Notes under the pieces: model-generated | Told to the model about the DNA's origin: nothing | The model's database searches: none | Seen by the model: the letters and a program-made list of their open reading frames with translations, nothing else | Position numbers and translations under genes: made by a program | NCBI GenBank assembly: GCA_038496445.1 | Contig: JALMLS010000322.1 | Location: 1,116,001-1,180,000 of the forward strand | DNA length: 64,000 bases | Source of the DNA: Trichosphaerium sp. ATCC 40318 | Lineage: Eukaryota; Protista; Tubulinea | Direction of reading: 5' to 3' | Shown: positions 46,177 through 61,192 of the stretch, in pieces | Numbering within the stretch: the first letter of the stretch is position 1 | Layout of the letters: each line of letters opens with the position of its first letter

Positions 46177-48680
46177 CTAACACAAGTGCATAAACTGCTC
46201 TTTGTTCTGCTCAGGAAGACTGGCTAATTTGAAAGGGATGTGCGTCACCGATTGGTATCCTTCTTGTCGCGTTGGTAGCTCCAACTTTTTGCGGAAAATG
46301 TTGTACGCTATTCCAGGTACTGGCTTCACGCCTTCAACAAGCTAAAACGAGAGTTAACAATGAACTTGGTTAAAAACTTATTCCATTTCCCATAACGGTT
46401 GGATTAAAAACGATGACCATGAAAATAAGAAAAAAGCAAATCCGACATCCACACTGTATTGTACGTACCCAGCGGTAGTTGTTGAGGTGTTTGGCCAACT
46501 CAATAGAAGTAGACATTACGAAACATCGGACGCGAATGCCGTGCTTAAGTGCGAGTTGTAGATATGGTTGTCTGAGAGAAAAAAATCCAAGTAAGTACAC
46601 TTGGAGTGTAGACCAGGTTTTTATGGCGACTTACCTTGATATTTTACTTGGATTTGTGTTATCTATGACTACATTTCGGCCACCAATGAGTGCAGTAGAC
46701 GCCGCTTTTAAACATTTTGCTATTTGGTAGTGTTAAGTTTGAAGTACGATTCCTTACATGTCCGTGTACCTTTAGTTTTGAGAATATCGCGATTAATTCT
46801 AGTGTATCCATTTGCTGCCATAATCGTCTTGGCAAACGTTGATTTTCCGCTGCCAGGATAGCCCACCTACGAGAAATGCAACATTAATAAACAGCTTGAG
46901 TCTAGTTCAACTCGAAGTGATTTGTTGTTTCAAGAACGCACAAGTATGATCATCTCCTGTTGTGTGCCAATGTAATCGCTTGGGTTGTGTGTGCCTGGGT
47001 CATCACATAAGGCCTGCAAGTCTTCAGGCGAAACACCGTCCCATCCAAAAGCCTCAGGTCCGGCATCCTGGAAGTACTCTGTCTCTGTTTTGAAAGCAAT
47101 GGACAAGTTCCATGCAAACTTCCTGTCAGAGCAACTAAAGTCCTTCTTTCGTGACCCAACAGCAGGTCTACCAGCAGCATCACCGACGTACATACAATTT
47201 GTCTTATCTACAAAAGAAAAAAAAAAGGTTAAAACAGGCCTTTGTTTGGGTTGCTATGGCGTTTACCTGGAGTAATGCCATCGTTGAAACTGCTGCACAT
47301 GAGATCCCACATGGCCAAGTTTGGTTTTCGGAACTCGTCACCAGTAGTAGCGATAAAGGCTTGTATTGGAAAACCAAGTTCGGCAGCGATATCCTCGATT
47401 TTTCCTTTAATGTCGTCCAGCTTCTGTTTGCCCTTGCTGATGCCGGCTTGATTTGTGAATATTACAATTTTGTGCCCGTCACTGCGAGCCTTATGCAACT
47501 TCGAGTGCATCGTCATAGGGAACATCCACTCCCAGTCATGACGATCTGTTGGGAAGCGGCGCCCGGATTTGGTTACGATCAGAGTAGAGTCCATGTCGAA
47601 GCCTGTTATCCGTGCGGAACCTTGTATACCCGGTGGATTGTACACAAGGCATGTAGAATGCATTGACCAATTGCTAGACCCCTAAATGATAACAGGTCAG
47701 TTTAGGATTGTCAACGGAGAATTGTACCTTAGGTTCAGCAGGTTTTGTTGTTGTTCTTTTTGACGTCCTGCCGACATTTGAGATGGTTGAAGCCTAGAAG
47801 AAATCTATGTTAGTCCCACCAGATATTTATCACACGTGTTAACATCACGGCACGCACTGTATTAACGCTTCTTAGCGGTTGTTTGGGTTGTTGTGCTATT
47901 CTTGTGTGTCCGTGCTGTGTCATGCTTAAAGCGCTTCCCCAGATTTGAGAGCCATGATTTGACTGTGTTGGGTTGACTCTGTATGCAGGCTTTGAAGTCG
48001 ACGTAGTAGGTCCTCGTGGCACGCCTGCAAATCCAGAATTCTTGTGAGGTGTCAATGTTTGACATAATGCGTCCACAGAGGGACGTGCAGCATGCAGATT
48101 TAGTGCGTTCTCAATGGCCGAGATGCCAAACAAGCCGTTTTGTTGTCGCGCGTGCATTGATTGGAATGGCGCTGAGGATAAAATTTGCGATATTTGCTGG
48201 TTTGGTAGTGATGTATTGTATCCCTGCGACGCTTTACCGCCATTTGTGCGTTCAACAAAAATTTGCGCGGTACGTTCGTGGAATTGCTTCAACCACGTCA
48301 AATCTTCCTATTCAACACGTTCGTTTTAGTTGTGTATTTTAAAATAAAAAGTTGTACAGGCCATGGAATGGAGAAAGGATCTTCTTCCTCTGCTACTACG
48401 TATGTAGGGTCCACCTCTGCAGAACCTAAACGGGTGTTAAAGCCGACAAGCCAAACAGGTTCCACGAAAACCTAACACTGTGTCTAAACATACACGCTGT
48501 TGTGGAAACACAGCACTTGAGCGTATCCGCGAGCTCTGGGAAGTCTTTTGTAATTTCAAAGATTTCAGTTGCTGCAACGATTTCTGGTTTAGTCTGATGC
48601 TTAACAACGTAGTCATGCTCTCTGGTAGTGAGACTTCCAGCTCTGCGTAAAATTTCAGCGAGTAGTGCAATCTGCGACAT
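46177..48680 (-). CDS. PNKP: Polynucleotide kinase 3'-phosphatase with long non-FHA N-terminal extension
   Basis: 'GFDMDSTLI', '[10 protein letters not shown]', 'FRKPN', 'YVGDAAGR...[10 protein letters not shown]', P-loop 'GYPGSGKST'. The N-terminal exons splice in frame; the start is approximate. Confidence 0.88.
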
Positions 48681-49050: not shown

Positions 49051-52000
49051 ATGCGCGTTGCTATTATAGGTTCTGGCGTAACTGGGCTTGCTGCCGCCTC
49101 ACATCTCCACAAACACGGTGCGCGCTGCAAACCTAACGATACACTATTTTTCTCGTTTGTATCTCGCAAACAAACCAAAACTAAATTCGTTTTGTCAGGC
49201 TGCGACGTTGTTGTCTATGAGGCAAGCGATCACGTTGGTGGGCACGCTCACACCCAATACGTTAACGGTAAGTACTTTTGTGCGAGCTGCGTAAAAAAAA
49301 AACCTACAGCGTCTAAGAACACTCTAGGTATACCTGTAGATACAGGTTTTATGGTTTTGAACAGAGTTACGTATCCAAACCTTCTGAAATGGTTCAAAGA
49401 GAGCGGTACGCAAAAGCAAACTTTTCAAAAAAAAAAAAGCTCTAGCTCCCTTTTGTGTTACGCTCTCATACTCATTAACTCTCTCAGGCGTGCTGTTAGA
49501 GAACTCGGAAATGTCGTTTTCTGTGAGTTTGAGCGACGCAAACATAGAGTGGAGTAGCGATGCGCCGTTTGCTTCCGCTGTACGTTTAAAACTATCGCTA
49601 TTGTATTTTTCCGTGCTTCGTGCGCAAAGGATTTATTCCGTTTCGCCTTTTTGCACTTTTTATCAAACTGCGACAAAAACTTATTGCAAACATAGTCTAG
49701 CTACTATAGTCCCAATTTTTACGGCATGTTGTACGATATTACGCGATTTAAGCGTGATGCAACGCAGTTTGTGGAAAATAAAGAGCCAGACACTACAACA
49801 ACCATGGAGCAGTTTTTGCAAAAACACGTACGACCGCATTTCCCAATTCTCAAAGGTCGGAACATTTAGTTTCCGATCGGGCCAATTTCGCGTTTGTGGA
49901 TCCAAACCAAAGACGAAAACTGCCCCATATACTCCATGTCCCTACCATCTCCTTACATTCTTTTTTTGTAGGGCTACGGCTACTACTTTATACACTACTA
50001 TTTGGTACCAATGATGGCAGCGATTTGGTCATGTGACACGGGAGATACACTCAAGTTTCCAGCCCTGTTTCTCTTGAAGTTTTTTTATAATCACCACCTA
50101 CTCCAAGTATCTGGTAGACCACTATGGCTCACTGTCAAAGGCCGCTGTGCGGATGGCTACGTTAGTAAGGTATGGCCTACCAGAAAAACAAACAATTCAC
50201 CAGTCATTGACAACGTGCTACATAGGTAACAGCTCCTTTTGCTGACAAGATTCATGTAAACAATCCAGTAAAGGAGGTGTATGCTACCTCTACCGGCAAA
50301 GTAAAAGTAGTGGCTAATGATGGTATGTCTTTGTTTGAACCAATACATAGTTCATATTATATTTCGTGACTAATGGGGCCGCTTAGAGGATGAGTTTGAT
50401 CGTGTCGTCTTTGCAAACCACGCACCAGATGTCTTGAAGATACTAAAGGATGTATTGCCTGAAGAGCAAGATGTACGTTGCGCTAGTGTTGGAACTTTTT
50501 CTGACGTGTGGGTGTTGTTAGATCCTCAGCAAATTCAAGTACCAAGAGAATGATGTATGGCTCCACCACGACACTTCTCTCATGCCTAAAAACCCTGCAG
50601 CATGGGCCTGCTGGAATTTTATTGGAAATAGTGACTGTACGAGAAAAAACCCATTATCGACACTTGTGCTGTTGCTGACTGCTTGGTTAGTGGGATGTTG
50701 CGTCACATATTGGTTGAAGCGGTTGCAGAACATTGAATCAAATGATCAACCCATCTTCGTTACCCTTAACCCTAGCACTCCACCAAAGGCCGAGCTTGTT
50801 GTGAATCACTGGAAGGCATCACACCCAGTGCCATCATTGCACACTATCAATTCGGATGACCTCTTTTCAAAAATTCAAGGAAAACGAAACATGTGGTTTG
50901 CAGGTGCCTACCAAGGCAACGGTTTCCATGAAGATGGCTTCAAGAGCGGTATGGCTGCTGCCAATGACTTGTTGCAAGGTACGTTCTAAGCGCCATACCT
51001 GTTGTGGCCTGTGGCTAACAGATTATTCGCTAGGACCATGGAAACCACTTCCAAACAATGTCATGCATCCGATCGGCATGGTCGATTCAATGTGCCGCAA
51101 TGTTGTCCTTTCGTACCTCAAGTCAACCATCTCATCTGGTACACTCGAAGTACACGACATTGGACATGGTGTCGTACGTCTTTTGTTATTATTACTGGAT
51201 TCTCTCTCTTGTTCTTGTGGCAAATCGACTAACACAGATGGACTTTAGACTACCATGGGCGATGGTAAGGAACCAAAGGCTATTCTGACTGTAATGCGTC
51301 CACAGTTTTACTCCAAGATGTGTTGGCGTTCCGCTCTAGGTACTATCACCCACACAGGTTATTGTTAGGCTGTTCCAGCTCACAATATTTCTAGGTCTTG
51401 CCGATGCTTTCATCGCCGGAGACGTATTGTGTGATGACCTTTGCATCTTGTTTGAACTCATTGTAAACAACAGAAAGAAGAAAGGTACGATATATCACTT
51501 TTTGGTTAAAGACAAGTTGTCTTTGTTTGTGATTGTAGTCGCTCACTCGCTTCTGTAGAAGGTGCTATTGCACCTAGTTTGATGACATCCATACTTGGAC
51601 AATTGACAGCTTACTGGACGCACCAGAGCCGAAATAACTCGGTTAACAACACGCGTCAGAACATTCACGAACACTACGATCTAGGCAATGACTTTTTCAA
51701 ACTGTTCTTGGACAAATCCATGTCGTACTCTTGCGGTATTTTTAACAAACCAGACGAAAGCCTTTACGACTCTCAAATGAACAAAGTGAATCGGTTGATC
51801 GAGCTCGCTTGTGTCAAACCAGGAGATCGTGTGCTGGAGGTAAGGAGGAGCCTTCAACCAATGACCTTATAAGTTATTAACCTTGTTTTCTGTAACAGAT
51901 TGGTTTTGGTTGGGGTACAATGAGTATTGAGCTGGCCAAGTTGGGTTGTAAGGTAACTGGATTGACTTTATCATCTGAGCAGAAGAAATACGCAGAACAG

Positions 52001-52854
52001 CGTGCTAAAGAAATGGTAAGTTAAACACGTGCATGACCCAATATCAGTGAGCTCAGTGTCGTTATCAGTATCCACCTCCATCACTTACACTCGCACTCTT
52101 AGGGCGTTGCTGATAATATCTCTTTTGAGCTTGTAGATTACAGACAGTATGTACCTGAGCAGAAGTTTGACAGAATAGTTTCTTGTGAGATGCTGGAAGC
52201 AGTTGGTACGATTGGCTCAATATAAACTCCTTTTTTTTTTACTTGTTCTTTAACATATCGACTAACTGTTGGCACTAGGTCATGATTATTTGCCTGACTT
52301 TTTTGATGTTTGCAACAAACTCCTCGGGCCAAATGGTATCCTGGTTGTCCAGGTCATTACTATCCCCGATAGCCGATACGAGGAGTACCGCAGGACAACA
52401 GACTTTATTCAGCAATACATCTTCCCAGGAGGTCACCTTCCATCCCTTGGCGCACTAACAGAGGCCATGGGCAAGAAGACGCCATTCATGGTGCGTATAT
52501 TGTAATTTGTTCTTTGTGGTTTTTACTGACCGTGGTTTGTTCCTATCAAGGTTGAAAGCGTTGACAATATTGGTCCACACTACGCAACAACATTACGTCA
52601 TTGGTTGAACCTATTCAGAGCCAAGGTACATTTCTCACAACAAGTTGTAATGTTTACATGGTACAATGTTGCTAAAATTGTGATTCTAGATTCCTGAAAT
52701 CAGATCTCAAGGATTCTCTGACGAATTTATTCGCACGTGGGAGTACTATTTTCAATACTGCGAAGCCGGGTTCAAGACAAGAACTTTGTCTGATTTACAT
52801 ATAGTGTTCACGCGCCCTGGTAACTATGATCTAGATACACAATTGTACAAATAA
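49051..52854 (+). CDS. Fusion of FAD-dependent oxidoreductase (COG2907/UfaD-like) and cyclopropane-fatty-acyl synthase-type SAM methyltransferase (UfaM/CFA-like)
   Basis: 'MRVAIIGSGVTGLAAA','VGGHAHT','VDTGFMVLNRVTYPN','WFAGAYQGNGFHEDG'. After an in-frame intron (50979-51033) come 'NIHEHYDLGNDFF.LFLDKSMSYSC','VLEIGFGWG','SCEMLEAVG','QYIFPGG','YYFQYCEAGF'. Confidence 0.92.
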
Positions 52855-53505
52855 GTAAAACTATTTTTTTTCCAAAGTTGCTTTATTGCTTTTATGATAG
52901 ATACTAACTACAATTAACTTGTTTGACCTCGATAATCACATTGAAAATCCAATGGATAACAGTACCGTACTCTAAAAAGCGTATTCCTGGCATTTTGACC
53001 TACCTGTCTTTACTTTGGCTGTAACTTTAATGTGTAATTCTACATATCATATACGCCTGCCAATGCGTTTATACCTTGGTCTGTTACAAGGTGGCTTTGC
53101 AAACTTACTGTGTACACCGCTGCATCCTATAATACTTGCATGACACTGGCGTTTAAAGGTCATTTGAAAGCAATTCACAGCAGTGGCTAGGATCGTGATA
53201 AAGACCTTCAACTCACGTTTTAAATCCGATAAGAGCAAATACAATATTATTCCATATTCTTTTTCGTTCTACAAACAGCTTGTTGAGTAAGACAGCTTGA
53301 GATTTTTGTAATTATCGCACAAGAAAAAAAGTTGTACTTTTCTAACCAAAATAACTTAACAACTTATCTTTGTGTCTTTACTTTGTTTACTTGTTAACTT
53401 GTTAATACAGTGCTTGGGGGTTTCTATTTACAAAGGGGTTGGTGAATTAGTGGTATGTACAATTTGATACAAAGCGAGGTTTGAAAAAAAAAACTGGAAT
53501 GAAAT

Positions 53506-56244
53506 CTAGTTCATTTCGTCAAGTTTGGTGTATGTCGCAGCAGCCATTATCACGTCGCTGTTCAAATCTCTTCGTAGGTGAAGGACACACCTCTCCAATG
53601 TGTGGTAAAGTTTGACGTGGTTTTCCATCAACGATAATTCTAAAAGGGGTTAGTGGCTAATCTCAAGAACACTAGTAAGGTAATCACAAGCTGCTCATTA
53701 AAAGCGCGCAAAGTTTCATGTGCGAGTAATGCTTGGGTGTACGTACTTCGCCATGTTTCTCTTTGGGACTTGTACAAGCAGTCGCGCATCATCGCCTTTG
53801 TAGGGTTCGATAGGAGCTGAGAATAGTCGCTCAATCCAACGTTAGGTACGATTGTTATATCTCCCTGTTTGATGCAGTTAGACAAACAACGATTTCAATA
53901 AAAGCAAGGACAGCAGTCCTGTCCGCATAGTGACCCGTTTTTGAAAAGATTGTAATGGTAATCACGTACCTTGTATTGCTGTGACACCAAGTTATGTAAC
54001 ATGTTCAACTGTTGTGGCCACAAACCAAGATGTTCGAGCTGTTCGATTAAACAATTAGCACACGTGTACATACATATTTCTGCAATACAAAAAACCGTGC
54101 GTCTCAATGTGGTGTACCTGTAAGATGCGATGCTTAAGTTCGGACGTTATACAATATGCTGCTTTACTAAGCAAGCTGTCGTTGATCTGATCTGTAGAGC
54201 TAATGAATGGTATAACGTGGGGATTAACCTAAAAATAAGGTCAACAAAACGTGCATGTGAATACTGAAGAGTAGGGTTTACCTGAGAAACAATAAAGTGA
54301 TTCACGTTAAACAGCTCACGCAACCGTATCATAGGCAAGTCATTCTCAACGCTGCCATCAGAGCACTTGATGCCCTTAGGATCATACCGTCCAATATTGC
54401 CATTCTCGTCTTTTGATTGAAGCTAAAAAACCGACGTGAATAACAAAAAGACATGCTTAAAAGCCAAAATGTAAAATATAGATGCCACGCGTGTAAGTAG
54501 ATTGTTGAAGCTCTAAATGTGGTTCACCTACCTCTACAGGTTCGTATAAAAATGCTAGCGCACATGAAGCGAGTGCTGCAGAGAAAACAAGAACCTACCC
54601 GAGGTTTAACGTCAACGTGAGGAAAACAAACAAGTTCAATGACTAGCGCGCGTACATTAGGTGCTGTGATGTAGTTTAAGAGGCGCGGATGATCGAACGT
54701 CTTGTTGCTGCACACTGTAATGTTGAGGATACAGCCAGTGCGCTGGTATGCCTCTTGAAAGGTGACATTGCCGATATTCGATCTAATGCAATCACCGAGC
54801 TTATTGATGTCCATCAACACGCCTAGAGACTGGAATCAACAAAAATAACGGGCGATGATAGAGCTAAAGAGTGGAAAGAAGGATTGTTTGTACCTTTTGT
54901 CATTAATCGTGCCAATTTTCTGTTTAGTGATCCTTCAGAATCGAATGCCTCAAATTGTAGATCTTCAAATTCGTTTTCAAGCATCTTTGAGAGCTCAGAT
55001 CTGGTCTTTGTACCTAAATTCATCTTTTTTTTAAAATGGATGCCTCGCCATTGTTTAAAACTTTTTTCACTAGCGTACCAACGAATGAAGCAATAATAGA
55101 ACCAATACTAGATCCAGAAATAATTTTGGGTAAAATATCTAGATGAACAAATCAGAAAAAGCGAATAACTTGTCCAGTTTTAGTTCTTTTTTTTCTATTT
55201 TGGATTTTTTTTGAAAAAAGATCTTCTCGACGTACCATTGTCGTGTAATACTTTGATGACACCCAAATGGTATAATCCTAATGTAGCACCACCACTGAGA
55301 CACAATGCTGTTCTACCATATGCTTGACGTGCGGCAAAGAAGAATTCAAACTTTTGCTGCGTATTAATGTAAGTAGAAATCACGTGGCAGTATTTTCGTT
55401 TTTGGATTGTGTGGGTTCAAAAATAAAAGCTCCGTTGATACAGCTAACACAGACCACGTGGGTAATGGTGTAATCTGTGCTAGGCGCATACTCGGGTATT
55501 CTGTAATTTGGGTGACTAGCGCTAGAGCCGCGGTTTTGGTACCTGTAGAGATACTGTTTTAAAGTTGCTGTGACATATGATGCGAAGAAGCTCGTCTGTT
55601 TCGTTTGTGTACTCCTCTATCAATTGTTTGGTACCAAAGTAACATTTCTCGTATAGTTTTGGGTTTCCAATGCCGGAAAAATTACGTCGCATCCCTTTAG
55701 GAAGATTATAAGCAAAATGTCGTCCCAAAAAAAAAAAAAAAAAAAAAAAAAACAACAAGAAAAAAAATTGTACCGTTACGGAGGAATAATAAAACTTCTT
55801 GAATATTCTCTGCGCTCAGTTTTGCCTTGTAGTATCGTAGCATAGCTAAGCGGTTTCGAATTGTTGTGTAGTCGTAAATATTCGATTCATCCATCTCTTT
55901 CCATTCATTGTTTCCTGAAATTCGCGTTAAAGGGCTGTGGCTTCGGGTATAGCAACACTACCTAGCTTTTTGTCGAGGGATAACGCTGCTTCTTTCCAAG
56001 TGGCGTAATCCTCGCTACTATCGAGTACATTGGTCAACCTTTCAAGTTCTTCTTTGTCTGGGTATACTGTTGTGAGTAGTGCCTAAAAATGTTACACTCT
56101 GAATTCCGCTCACCACGGAGATGTATATACATGTGCTGGTGCCCTTTAGAAGGGTGGCGCACAAAAGTAGGCTTTTTGCTCAAAGGTTGTTGAATGTACC
56201 TTTGGTAAGAACGCACTAGCTGCCCAGTACGCGTATGAAGTCAT
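53506..56244 (-). CDS. Patatin-domain triacylglycerol lipase (SDP1/TGL3-5 family)
   Basis: '[21 protein letters not shown]', 'IISGSSIG' (GxSxG), '[14 protein letters not shown]', '[10 protein letters not shown]', '[25 protein letters not shown]'. Confidence 0.9.
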
Positions 56245-56698
56245 TTTTATGCTAGAAATTTACTACTGTACTTGGGTTATCCTGCCAATCACAAACTTTC
56301 AGTTACTTATATAGATACCTAGTGCTAAAGTGCTGGGTGTGGCTGTTGACTTATTTGAATTTTGAAATGATTTTTGTTTTTGCTGTCGCTTAATGTGGCG
56401 TCTTTAAGCACTGCGAGCCCATACTGTAGTAATGATTAAATGCAACTTACGACACTGACCCATGTCTGTGTAGCATCGTAAAACGTCAGTATGCGAAAAT
56501 AGTTTCAAGGAAGCCAATTCAGGTATTACTACCAATCCAACTATTAAAAATTTCTGATTTGTATTTATACATGGTGGAACTACAACGTAGATCATATGTG
56601 GCGAAATTGCTATACATGATGACGTGATGAATTCCTCTGGGAGTTCAAATATGATTAACCAATTTAGAGACAGATCGCCACTACTGTAGCCAATGAGG

Positions 56699-58492
56699 TT
56701 ATTGAGGTTTTACCTTTGGGTGTGGAATGTATGGCACGCCACTGCAAATGAGTTTAAGCGCTTGCCAATGTATACCAGCAAAGACCTTGAACGTCATCAA
56801 AGGATGCTTCGCTAAGATCCACAGTAGATTAGATTGTGTCACTTCATGCCTTTGCACGTGCAATGACGCCTATGACAGAAAAATTGGTATGTAAAGTAAA
56901 AAAACCCTTCCGTACAATAAAATTGAGCTTTTGTGTCGTTTCGTGTGTCATAAGCCAAGTCATCTGTAGCAAACGGGTTAGTACGCTGTTTCAGTATAGA
57001 AAAATTGGATGCATACATTCCAGTTCTCGTTGGGCGTATCGTACTTTGCTCGATAGTCATAATGCATTTTAAAAAATGGAGAAACATGCCTGGACAACGC
57101 CGATATTAGCAGATAGACTCAAAGGCAGAAGAAATAAAAACCATGACGTACATTATTTTAGTGAATTTGTCTGTCATTCTCTTGGGGTTTAGTGGAGTGC
57201 AGGCGTGGGTGTAGTAGCATTTTTCACCCCTAGCACAAATGAGTTAGATTTACTGGCGTTGATCGGTGTATACAGCGGTACCAAGGTGTGTTGGTTACTT
57301 CAGAGAGCATGGCGACCAGCTTGCCAGATTCATCCTTGCACCAATAATACGAGATTGGATTAAAAGTGTATCCCCAGTACCGCCAGTTTGTAAGCAAGTA
57401 AACCTTACCTAACATTAAAACAGGTTAGTATTTCTGAAATGCAGGAAGCTGCCTTATGTTCAAAAACACAAACCTGACACTTTCTTTCCTGTATCTTGGA
57501 ATACCTTTTCGTGCACTTGTTCACGACTCAAGTATTCTGATTTGCGTAAATAACCCAACGCTGGCTTTTGTGAGTCTCCTACAAGTGAACTGTTTTTAGT
57601 TCATCATTTATACTAGATATTGACCTTTGACCAGTGCGTACCTGTGTCATTGCTTGACCATAGCCAATACTGATCAAAGGCATAATCAGTATCATCGTTG
57701 AGTTCAATCATCATCATGAAAACATCATAAGAAAATTTATGATCACGTGGCGATGTATCCGTCTTGAAACGACGATGGAATACTGATCCAGCGTAGATGT
57801 ATTTCTCTACATGAAATGCTCTGGATGCTAGAATCTTTTCATTCGGGCCGTTCAGGTCGCCGACAAGTCCAAATAAATTGAGTACAACGAGCACTTGGTA
57901 GGTCATATCGAATTCCCACAACTGATGTGCAAAATTAGCGGCTAAAACGTCCGCTTTGTGATTGTTTTGATAACCTGTCAACTGTCAACAATGTGTTCAA
58001 CCGTGTCGTGGAGGATAAGGGTGTTACCTTGACCTGCTGTGAGTAGCGCTACAATCGTGTTATTCACGCCATCCGCTTTGTACGATTTGGTGCCATAAAA
58101 CCCCACTTCGAGGCATCTGTTAGCGAGATAAAGCAAAATCTCTGGTATTATAACGCCACTCAACACGCCGAACCTACAATGCGTTAAAACAATACGGATT
58201 TAACGCTCACCATAACGCAGATACCACTGACGCTGCTATCCATACAATTACGCGCAACAGGGTTGACGCAAAACTCGTTCTTAGCGCCTACTGTTCTTCA
58301 ATCATTACGCAAATGCGCTTAAAGTACCTTTGAGTGTATATTGACGCATGACAAGAGATAAAGAACGGTAGTTGTAAAAGCTGGTGCGGTAAAAAGTTTC
58401 TCCTTGTGCCTCAGGACGATATTACTTGCTACTTGCCGCCATTGCGCTTGTAAAATGCCAATGGCGGTTAGCTGTACGAGATATCTTATCAT
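56699..58492 (-). CDS. DUF1365 (UfaO-like) protein with N-terminal degenerate membrane delta-9-desaturase remnant (3' end uncertain)
   Basis: DUF1365 motifs 'GSVFHRRF...HKFSY.VF', 'YWGYTFNPISYYWC', 'EVTNTPW.E', 'HVSPF', 'PLMTFKVFAGIHWQALKL'. These are preceded in frame by TM segments and 'NNTIVALLTAGQG|YQNNHKA...WEFDMTYQVL..L..FGLV'. Confidence 0.85.
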
Positions 58493-58636
58493 GACGATTC
58501 CCTTTATTCGCGCTATATCCTAATGGCACGTTATATAGCGTATGCACCAAATGTAGGTTTATTGCGCTTGAGACAGCATCACTTAAGCGAGTAGACGAAG
58601 TCGCTCTTATAAGTGTTCCAAAAAACCTAAACCACT

Positions 58637-61192
58637 ATGGCCACTATTCGCGACATTGTACTAGGCATACGCCACGCGGTATGTAAGCGTATTCACATAC
58701 CATACATTAACAATTATCAAGACAAGCGCTGCAGATAAAAACCAGGTTCAAAAATTGACTTCGGAGGAATATAGAGATATACAGCGGTTCAAATTACGTG
58801 GGTAAGCGCAAAATAACAAGTAATGTTTTTTGAGTTGTGCACGTGGTTTGGATAGCAGATCTACGCCAAAACAAAACGCAAAACAGTCTGTGTATACGCC
58901 CTAACACTGTCCTTTAGAGACGAAGAATTTGAGATAAAAGCCTACGCTCCTCACGTATTCCATCACTTGCGCAAGATACATGGTATTAGCGCCAAGTCCT
59001 TTTTGGTGCGTCTTCTTTTTTTTGTAATGTCTGTTTTCGCCTGTCTTGTATTGCTTGTATCGTCCATTGTTACAAACGGTATTAGGGTTCTTGGATATTA
59101 CCCGCTAAAAAAGAGGATGTAACCCTGGATGAGTCGACAGGGCGGTCAGGATCAATGTTCTACATGACCGAGGATAAGAAGTATTTTTTCAAGACGATCC
59201 TACACGCAGAGGCACGTGTCGATGGTTGTCACTTTTTGTTTTTGACATTGGCACAGGTTGGTGCGTTGATGGTAATGTTAGAAGACTACGTCAAGGTATG
59301 CCCGGTTTTTAACAGTGAGTTTCTTGTGGATATTGAGTTGCCTACTACTACAGCATTTGAACAAACACAAGCGATCTTTCATAATGAAAGTCTTTGGGAT
59401 GTATCGCTTAGAAACTGGACGGTAATGACGGTGTAGTAAACATGCTTTGACTGATTTCCCTATTAGAACAGTGAAGCCAACACAAACATGGTTGATTGTT
59501 ATGGGTAATGTGTTACCTACAAGACTGAAGATACACGAAAAGTACGGCTTTCTGAACGGTTTAGTAAAAGTTAATTGTTGTGTTCTCAAGATATGATTTA
59601 AAAGGACGAACAGCAAAACCTGGAAAGAGTTACGCTGAGCGTGGAAAGACGTCTGAAGGACCTGTGAAGGATAATGAGATTAATAGAATATTAAAGTTTA
59701 TTCAGTACTACTACTACAACCACCTCTGTAAACAGTGCTGACAAAGGTTAGTGAAGACGACAAGAAGTTATTCATCAAGCAGGTGACGGACGATATAAAT
59801 GTAAGCACTTTTTTTGACGCCAGTTTTTTTGACTTAAATAATTGTTTAGCTTCTTGGCAGGAAAAATATTATGGATTATTCCCTGTTAGTTGGTTAGGCC
59901 CAATTCTTATTTACTTTTTGTAACATCCGTGTGACAGGTATTCACCATGTTGGGGAACTTGACAAGGACGAGATGGATAAAGTAGATCAAGTTATTGAAA
60001 CTGGTTCTGATCCTGAAAGGCCACGTGATATTGCAGAAAATGCTTCAGAGGTTCATCTTTAAATATTATTTCTTGTGTATTTGTATTAACTCTTCTTGAA
60101 GGATGAAAAATCCAGCGATTCTGGAGAAGCAAAAGCACCAGAGAGTGGTGCTGAAGAAAAAACAGAAAAGAAACATGGAAGGCAAAGGAAGAAGGCTGTA
60201 TCTGAGGGCGCAAAATCTAAGCCAAAAAAAAAGAAGGAATCATTTGGCGAAAACTTGTATACTGTCATGGTAATACCCCATGAATTAAGGTCTTTCTTTA
60301 AAACCAACGTAGGTTGACGATATAGCTCCGCTTAAATCAGATATAAACACGTGGGACACCAAGAAGATATTGGAAGAGGAACGTTTCATGGCAGAAAGCT
60401 GCAAAAGGTATGTTTGCTTATTGCTAGCCATAATAACGGTTTTTTTCTTCAAGTCCTTTTGGATTCGGTATGGAATGTGAGAATCCTACCACTGGTGGTA
60501 AAGAGGCACGACATGCGTAATAGACATATCGTGAATAATTGTGCTGATATATTAGATTGTGTTTATAGGCATCATCGATTGTCTCACCAACTACCATCTT
60601 GGCAAGCGTGTTGCTCATTTTATGAAAAAGTTTATTTGGTATGTGACTCTTTAAGGCATTTCGTTTAGAAACCAACATCACCCTAATTTTGTGCGCTTAG
60701 GGAGTCTTCAACACTATCAACGGCATAACTTTTCATTTCATTAGAGTACGATGTACTAATTGTGCTAACTGTAGGTCCGTGCCGAGTTTTATGCTGAAAG
60801 ATTCTGGCATTTTATGACCCACGATTTAATCGGTGAAGAAGTAGATCCAGACAAGGAAGAAACAAGGCACGTGACCTTTTTATTTTCAGTGTACGTTTCA
60901 ACTCAAATTGTACTAACTAGCAGCTCGATTAGGATAAAGACAGACGAGCCACAGCTCATTCCAGAGCTTCGTGTTAACACTGATAGGTAACCCATTACCC
61001 ATTCAGTTAAATGTTCCTCCTTACACATGTGCCAATAGGGTAAGAAAGCGCAGTCGTAGTTTGGGATATGGCAACGTACGAAGGAACACCATCAGCGGGC
61101 ACACGCCGTTTAAAGGTGAAAAAAAAGAAGGAGAAGAGAAAGATGGTGGCAACAAGGATCAGGACGCTGAAGAACAACATTCTTTTGAGTGA
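58637..61192 (+). CDS. Phosphatidylinositol phosphate kinase (PIP5K/PIP4K family)
   Basis: 'IKAYAPHVFHHLR', 'GRSGSMFYMTEDKKYFFKTI', 'YDLKGR', 'MDYSLLVG', 'IGIIDCLTNY'. Confidence 0.9.

Follow-up and report, generated by a model that had tools for sequence, protein, structure and literature searches.

Linked fusion genes of Ufa-like fatty-acid-modifying families in the amoeba Trichosphaerium sp.

The window analyzed here is a 64,000-nucleotide stretch of nuclear DNA from the marine amoebozoan Trichosphaerium sp. ATCC 40318 (MMETSP0405; contig JALMLS010000322.1, positions 1,116,001 to 1,180,000), which is intron-rich and eukaryotic in character, with a G+C content of ~40%. Three genes, here called G1, G2 and G3, occupy a locus whose outer start codons lie at 49051 and 58492. 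The original prediction for this locus had named a flavin adenine dinucleotide (FAD) oxidoreductase fused to a methyltransferase, a triacylglycerol lipase and a DUF1365 protein, together forming an operon-derived cluster for furan or otherwise modified fatty acids. Pfam searches, made on single exons of each gene, spliced transcript contigs and homology models all bear out three intron-rich genes of these families at these positions. In window coordinates, the genes and their domains are as follows.

49051–52855, plus strand: G1, UfaD-type FAD oxidoreductase joined to a CMAS methyltransferase; 19 exons, 837 amino acids, homology-guided model.
49051–50978, plus strand: G1 exons 1–10, FAD/NAD-binding domain of the amine-oxidase type, amino acids 1–411, with a GSGVTG dinucleotide motif at the N terminus.
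51034–52855, plus strand: G1 exons 11–19, N-terminal domain of the CFA-synthase type and CMAS catalytic domain, amino acids 412–837, with the S-adenosylmethionine (SAM) motif VLEIGFGWG.
53506–56244, minus strand: G2, DUF3336 and patatin triacylglycerol lipase of the SDP1/TGL type; 14 exons, 520 amino acids, 12 introns taken from spliced contigs of transcriptome run X1.
56699–58492, minus strand: G3, desaturase remnant joined to DUF1365; 10 exons, 440 amino acids, from X1 contigs and identical to the transcript open reading frame P0020.
57838–58492, minus strand: G3 amino acids 1–175, truncated remnant of a delta-9 acyl-CoA desaturase (blastp, His-box alignment, hydropathy and structural model).
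56699–57811, minus strand: G3 amino acids 184–440, complete DUF1365 domain of the UfaO type (Pfam, Legionella alignment and predicted local distance difference test scores, pLDDT).

All three genes are expressed and spliced, as judged by k-mer content, transcript contigs and peptide identity. Transcriptome run X1 contains 46% of the 31-mers of the region; the exon models of G1, G2 and G3 together predict a share of 0.474, compared with 0.263 expected from G2 and G3 alone and 0.46 observed. X1 contigs on 52700–58650 are spliced, every part that they skip running GT..AG on the minus strand, and one X1 contig covers the last exon of G1. The 440-amino acid model of G3 is identical to the MMETSP0405 transcript open reading frame P0020, and a 123-amino acid exon translation is 99% identical to an MMETSP0405 peptide with taxon id 498012, the taxon of this amoeba. 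Bacterial contamination as a source of the locus was ruled out because the genes carry introns and give spliced transcripts.

The exon model of G1 was started from tblastn hits of bacterial operon proteins and then fitted by hand to bacterial homologues; the protein would be 831 amino acids long if intron 2 ended at 49327. All 18 introns of this model are GT..AG, with donors that are mostly GTAC or GTAA, as in G2 and G3. Pfam detected Amino_oxidase/NAD_binding_8 (E 4e-11) and CMAS (PF02353; E 2.5e-20 and 8e-13). By blastp, both halves align end to end with proteins of bacterial operons: amino acids 2–411 with residues 13–422 of a 431-residue Cupriavidus FAD protein (40% identity, E 7e-100), and amino acids 425–825 with residues 6–403 of a 405-residue Legionella CFA-family protein (37% identity). 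The GSGVTG motif, the Pfam match and this full-length similarity place the first half with UfaD; the CMAS match, the VLEIGFGWG motif, best scores to the CMAS proteins encoded after DUF1365 genes and a Gln shared with them place the second half with the UfaM subtype. A reading of the tuberculostearic acid type (BfaA/BfaB) was set aside, since BfaA belongs to a different flavoprotein family.

G3 had been called as a DUF1365 gene by the original prediction, and this call was correct; the desaturase remnant at its N terminus had been missed. The DUF1365 domain (PF07103) is complete, with Pfam E values of 2.5e-15 on a single exon and 1.4e-46 on the partial G3 sequence P0001. Amino acids 189–436 align with residues 6–246 of a 256-residue Legionella operon DUF1365 protein at 33% identity, and the invariant His, Glu and Arg residues are present in DUF1365 proteins of the eukaryotic clade. 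From amino acid 87 onward, G3 aligns by blastp with protein P0002 of Corallochytrium limacisporum from its residue 195 (42% identity, E 3e-87), in which Pfam finds FA_desaturase followed by DUF1365. Pfam did not detect FA_desaturase on the pieces of G3. A delta-9 desaturase carries three His boxes (HxxxxH, HxxHH and HxxHH); alignment shows that boxes 1 and 2 are absent from G3 and that GQGYQNNHK stands at box 3, where GEGWHNNHH would be usual, and G3 therefore cannot bind the di-iron center. Membrane-like hydrophobic helices are indicated by hydropathy at amino acids 59–102. The desaturase part of G3 has thus lost its iron-binding His residues, and its sole remaining role is most likely that of an anchor at a membrane or lipid droplet. 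An AlphaFold2 model built on a 59-sequence alignment gave a beta-rich DUF1365 part with pLDDT >90 and low-confidence helices for the N-terminal remnant. Fold searches returned only weak matches to nitrobindin, to the FABP-like proteins Ycf58/Rv0813 and to the polyether spirocyclases OssO/OlmO (Z 6–7.5, TM score on the target 0.43–0.54), which are compatible with a calycin-like barrel around an acyl chain and are best taken as a lead, not a classification.

The families found in G1 and G3 are those of a characterized bacterial pathway. In R. sphaeroides, the CFA-like methylase UfaM (RSP2144) methylates cis-vaccenate, the NAD/FAD-binding protein UfaD (RSP1091) forms a conjugated methyl-diene and the DUF1365 protein UfaO (RSP1090) inserts O2 to give the furan fatty acid 9M5-FuFA; the adjacent genes RPA2571, RPA2570 and RPA2569 of R. 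palustris are ufaD, ufaO and ufaM, and are both required and sufficient to give 9M5-FuFA (PMC7380195). These assignments agree with those given in the original prediction, as does its statement that the families are operon neighbors in bacteria. For operon statistics, metagenome contigs were scanned with a profile of the eukaryotic DUF1365 clade, giving 80 loci, nearly all bacterial. In 50 of the 52 loci with room for one, the gene directly upstream of the DUF1365 gene is a FAD gene of the same strand, and in 48 of 50 the gene directly downstream is a CMAS gene, an order (FAD–DUF1365–CMAS) that hardly varies. Because 18 of the 80 loci begin with a delta-9 desaturase of the acyl-CoA type, directly upstream of the FAD gene, the desaturase is a recurrent fourth member of the module. 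DUF1365 and CMAS are themselves fused in a bacterial cluster of 61 members from Actinomycetota (~578 amino acids; ESM Atlas), a third kind of fusion within the module.

Between them, G1 and G3, which are convergent in Trichosphaerium and lie 3.8 kb apart with G2 in between, bear all four families of the bacterial operon. We therefore consider it fairly probable that this locus represents, in the amoeba, a conserved fatty-acid-modifying module of four parts, carried in two fused genes. In bacteria, the module takes the form of an operon, (delta-9 desaturase)–UfaD–UfaO–UfaM; G1 would correspond to a UfaD-type FAD desaturase with a UfaM-type SAM methyltransferase, and G3 to a desaturase-derived membrane part with a UfaO-type DUF1365 domain. 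Every chemical step and the product are proposed by analogy with Rhodobacter and Rhodopseudomonas. On an acyl chain with one cis double bond, carried by a membrane or droplet lipid, the methyltransferase of G1 would place a methyl group, the outcome being a methyl-branched trans-olefin and not a cyclopropane. The FAD domain of G1 would then introduce a second, conjugated double bond, and the DUF1365 beta-barrel of G3 would close the furan ring with O2. A Ufa-like reading is supported at the levels of homology, linkage and fusion; whether the product would be a furan, methyl-branched or cyclopropane fatty acid cannot be read from the sequence.

Linkage of G1-type and G3-type genes, one of the checks suggested with the original prediction, recurs in two other eukaryotic contigs. 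In the first (L004), a G1-like gene stands head to head with a desaturase–DUF1365 fusion gene ~1.3 kb away, its FAD domain being ~50% identical to that of G1; the contig is eukaryotic, with ribosomal S3Ae, EMP24 and ENTH genes. In the second (L012), an intron-bearing G1-like gene stands head to head, 1.9 kb away, with the gene for fusion protein P0142, and is cut off by the end of the contig at the position matching G1 amino acid 457. The two fusion proteins are only ~25% identical to each other. Contigs L005, L006 and L007 end too near the gene to inform on linkage. Fusions of this kind were found in Corallochytrium and in six metagenomic clusters (P0142, P0004, P0003, P0008, P0005 and P0015), the protein searches having been made against 1.84 billion representatives with a length window that excluded FAD–CMAS fusions of 830–870 amino acids (plants, algae and the MMETSP peptide of G1). 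Only the Corallochytrium fusion has all three His boxes intact, and its N-terminal domain is ~50% identical to bacterial-type delta-9 desaturases. Independently of these results, the G1-like gene of L004 (6414–8680, minus strand, in an AT-rich eukaryote) was seen to hold the FAD and CFA N-terminal domains and to end where the CMAS catalytic domain would start; the 19.5-kb locus showed no CMAS catalytic part, and the gene may be truncated or affected by a low-coverage assembly error.

This recurrence bears on whether G1 and G3 are adjacent by chance and functionally unrelated in Trichosphaerium. The orientation and spacing of the pair are unlike those of the other eukaryotic loci, and the Arabidopsis homologues lie on different chromosomes (PMC10940516), as would be expected if adjacency meant nothing. 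For a genome tens of megabases in size, we estimate a prior near 1e-4 that two named genes fall within ~4 kb of each other; moreover, two distant eukaryotic contigs and nearly all of the bacterial loci show the same pairing, and the families are joined by three different fusions. Chance adjacency is accordingly regarded as highly improbable.

The ancestry of the pair was examined by tree building. The DUF1365 domains of eukaryotes and of fusions all fall into a single clade (support 100/98) amid bacterial operon proteins, so G3 is not a recent transfer. In the desaturase tree, the four eukaryotic domains group together, separate from the clade that the operon-linked bacterial desaturases make up, and the Corallochytrium desaturase domain has as its top database matches proteins that are not operon-linked. 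Because the tree gives no nesting and the top matches point elsewhere, descent of the fusion's desaturase from that of the operon was dropped. The description of the cluster as operon-derived is not supported as it stands, with DUF1365 sitting in an old eukaryotic clade and the desaturase domain placed outside the operon-linked one; that the eukaryotic gene pair derives from an operon is plausible. The eukaryote-clade profile gave no plant protein in its 120 best matches, so that the plant Ufa-like proteins may represent another lineage of the family.

The methyltransferase domain of G1 was compared with CMAS proteins of the bacterial loci and with known enzymes. It reaches 273–279 bits with the CMAS proteins encoded after DUF1365; E. 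coli Cfa gives 167 bits, and the second CMAS paralogues, which are short, give ~80. In E. coli Cfa, the side chains of Glu239, His266 and Tyr317 bind bicarbonate and are needed for cyclopropanation (PMC11387697). The equivalents of Cys139, Glu239 and Tyr317 are retained in G1, and that of His266 is replaced.

52350–52352, plus strand: G1, codon for the Gln that aligns with His266 of E. coli Cfa, a bicarbonate ligand.

The same Gln occurs in all 54 of the bacterial CMAS genes that follow DUF1365, whereas His is found in E. coli Cfa, in MmaA2 and in 14 of the 15 second CMAS paralogues of the same loci; neither UfaM itself nor the plant cyclopropane synthases of Sterculia and cotton were part of this comparison. 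Within that set, the Gln distinguishes the methyltransferases linked to DUF1365 from cyclopropane synthases of proven function, and it would fit another fate of the carbocation, such as the methyl-branched olefin that UfaM makes.

These residues speak to a second explanation, in which G1 is a cyclopropane synthase of the plant type (like Sterculia cyclopropane synthase (CPS) or GhCPS1/2) that makes dihydrosterculate-like acids, with the FAD and DUF1365 parts either oxidizing or desaturating the product further or being unrelated to it. The sole eukaryotic fusions whose product has been demonstrated have the same two-domain architecture as G1, and their oxidase domain is not needed for cyclopropanation (PMC3132707); the retained Cys139, Glu239 and Tyr317 equivalents agree with such an activity. 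The exchange of His266 for Gln, shared with every DUF1365-linked CMAS, does not, and no cyclopropane acid was obtained with the operon-type, oxidase-linked Agrobacterium homologue expressed in yeast, with GhCPS3 or in Arabidopsis tissues (PMC3132707). On balance, a plant-type cyclopropane synthase appears rather unlikely.

G2 is intact and has a DUF3336 domain (Pfam E 1.6e-14) followed by a patatin domain that is weak in Pfam (E 3e-4 on one exon), with the motifs GGATLG at 175, GSSIG at 202 and DGS at 352; GxSxG and the catalytic Asp of a lipase of the SDP1/Tgl type are thus both in place. Its 5′ untranslated region (UTR) begins less than ~200 bp past the 3′ end of G3, on the same strand. One further intron was inferred from the sequence.

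55695–55773, minus strand: G2 intron that spans a poly-T run.

The poly-T/poly-A run itself (55718–55771) lies inside this intron, and the contigs of both transcriptome runs, X1 and the larger X2, end there.

The position of G2 invites a third explanation, namely a true metabolic cluster of three genes in which the SDP1-type lipase releases or remodels furan acyl chains from triacylglycerol at lipid droplets, much as the original prediction had it. The lipase gene does lie between G1 and G3, close behind the latter on its strand, and the Arabidopsis UFAM/UFAD, UFAO1 and SDP1 proteins are all found on lipid droplets (PMC10940516, PMC12712439, PMC13247531). No patatin gene was found in the 80 DUF1365 loci, nor beside the gene pair in L004 and L012; no contig bridges G3 and G2, and one intervening gene is what would be expected to remain after a local rearrangement. 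A true three-gene cluster is considered quite improbable. What stands of it is a recurring linkage of two genes with four pathway domains; a tie to the lipase would come only from plant lipid-droplet data. G2 is probably a lineage-specific neighbor, with a shared site of action at the lipid droplet being possible.

Several points weigh against reading the locus as a copy of the four-part module. Where the product of a eukaryotic FAD–CMAS fusion has been proven, namely for those of Sterculia and cotton (GhCPS1 and GhCPS2), it is a cyclopropane acid (PMC3132707). R. sphaeroides has a CMAS-sized gene after ufaO (RSP1089, 402 amino acids) that is dispensable, UfaM being encoded elsewhere, and position alone is therefore no proof of UfaM function. 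The model of G1 is based on homology and not on aligned reads, and the trees do not include the proven Ufa enzymes of R. sphaeroides (UfaM, UfaD and UfaO). Finally, the fusion gene of one contig (L013) has a different upstream neighbor, and the Trichosphaerium pair is convergent with a gene between, compared with the head-to-head pairs of L004 and L012.

Extending this four-part reading to other organisms, it is conceivable, and we put it forward tentatively, that the four-gene module persists in several microbial eukaryotes as two neighboring fused genes, with a membrane di-iron desaturase domain as the partner of UfaO that is intact in Corallochytrium and a dead anchor in Trichosphaerium and others. 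If so, this would single out the desaturase as the partner that UfaO had at first, activating oxygen or supplying substrate for it, and two genes would give eukaryotes a compact path to furan fatty acids. These acids, which occur in algae, plants, fish and food, are potent scavengers of radicals, and to our knowledge their biosynthesis has not been demonstrated in any eukaryote. A linked two-gene version in a culturable amoeba provides a small and testable set of candidates, and the desaturase–UfaO fusion, with one intact form (Corallochytrium) and several degenerate ones, offers a natural experiment on the partner that UfaO needs. The Gln-for-His exchange gives a simple sequence rule for telling DUF1365-linked methyltransferases from true cyclopropane synthases; should the rule hold for proven UfaM and for the plant synthases, it would aid the reannotation of many "cyclopropane synthase" genes.

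Two bacterial plasmids provide further genomic context. A Legionella lytica plasmid (L001) carries the operon followed by DUF2878, DUF1295, DUF2177, a short-chain dehydrogenase/reductase gene and a photolyase gene, and a Streptomyces plasmid (L003) carries it beside an extracytoplasmic function (ECF) sigma/anti-sigma pair. Both contexts echo the sigma-E singlet-oxygen regulon of R. sphaeroides and the SAK1-dependent DUF1365, CFA1/2 and DUF2177 genes of Chlamydomonas, where CFA1, CFA2, the DUF1365 gene and the DUF2177 gene are induced by singlet oxygen via SAK1 (PMC4067076). Homologues of DUF2878 and DUF1295 were not found in the window.

Several observations were made on the transcripts, the introns and the remainder of the window. 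Run X2, recorded in 2024 and much larger than X1, yielded spliced pieces of G2 and of the ends of G1 and G3 at 95–99% identity, so that this second sample contained the species itself or one closely related. Across all 40 introns of G1, G2 and G3, the donors show a strong preference for GTAC(G), and some of the spliceosomal introns are very short (58174–58210, 37 nucleotides; 58288–58327, 40 nucleotides; 56870–56915, 46 nucleotides). Directly upstream of G1 lies a PNK3P gene (polynucleotide kinase 3′-phosphatase; 46930–47663, minus strand; Pfam E 1.6e-34), unrelated to lipid metabolism. Between 32000 and 38000, the G+C content of the window falls to 0.34–0.37, with a strong negative GC skew at 36–38 kb.

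Among known systems, the nearest in Arabidopsis are AT3G23510, a FAD–CMAS fusion, and AT1G30130, a DUF1365 protein, which were named UFAM/UFAD and UFAO1 in 2024 by homology alone; both, like SDP1, are lipid-droplet proteins (PMC10940516, PMC12712439, PMC13247531). The idea of a eukaryotic Ufa pathway is thus less new than the original prediction had assumed. No description of a desaturase–DUF1365 fusion or of a eukaryotic linkage was found in the searched papers that mention DUF1365; both appear to be undescribed, while eukaryotic Ufa-like genes were already known. What is added here is the desaturase–UfaO fusion, the conserved linkage in eukaryotes and the Gln signature. Trichosphaerium shares with Arabidopsis the FAD–CMAS fusion, represented by G1, and a separate DUF1365 protein, with a putative furan role drawn from the same bacterial homology; in contrast, the genes of the plant are not linked, and UFAO1 has not been reported to carry a desaturase part.

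Compared with bacterial UfaM, UfaD and UfaO, the Trichosphaerium locus has the same three families, their physical linkage and full-length identities of 33–40% to operon-type proteins, these rather than proven Ufa sequences being the basis of the comparison. It differs in that the genes are spliced, nuclear and fused pairwise, as FAD with CMAS and as desaturase remnant with DUF1365. With the plant cyclopropane synthases, G1 has in common an N-terminal FAD oxidase domain joined to a CMAS domain; the Sterculia CPS and the cotton fusions GhCPS1 and GhCPS2 make cyclopropane acids, and their oxidase domain is dispensable (PMC3132707). G1 has Gln in place of the bicarbonate-binding His of cyclopropane synthases, a difference established with Cfa and MmaA2, not with the plant enzymes. 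The N-terminal part of G3 aligns with the C-terminal half of bacterial-type acyl-CoA delta-9 desaturases, from which it differs in lacking His boxes 1 and 2 and in having a spoiled box 3. As with SDP1 and yeast Tgl3–5, G2 has DUF3336 followed by patatin with a Ser-Asp dyad; at the level of sequence, no difference from these lipases was seen, and its position is its only unusual feature.

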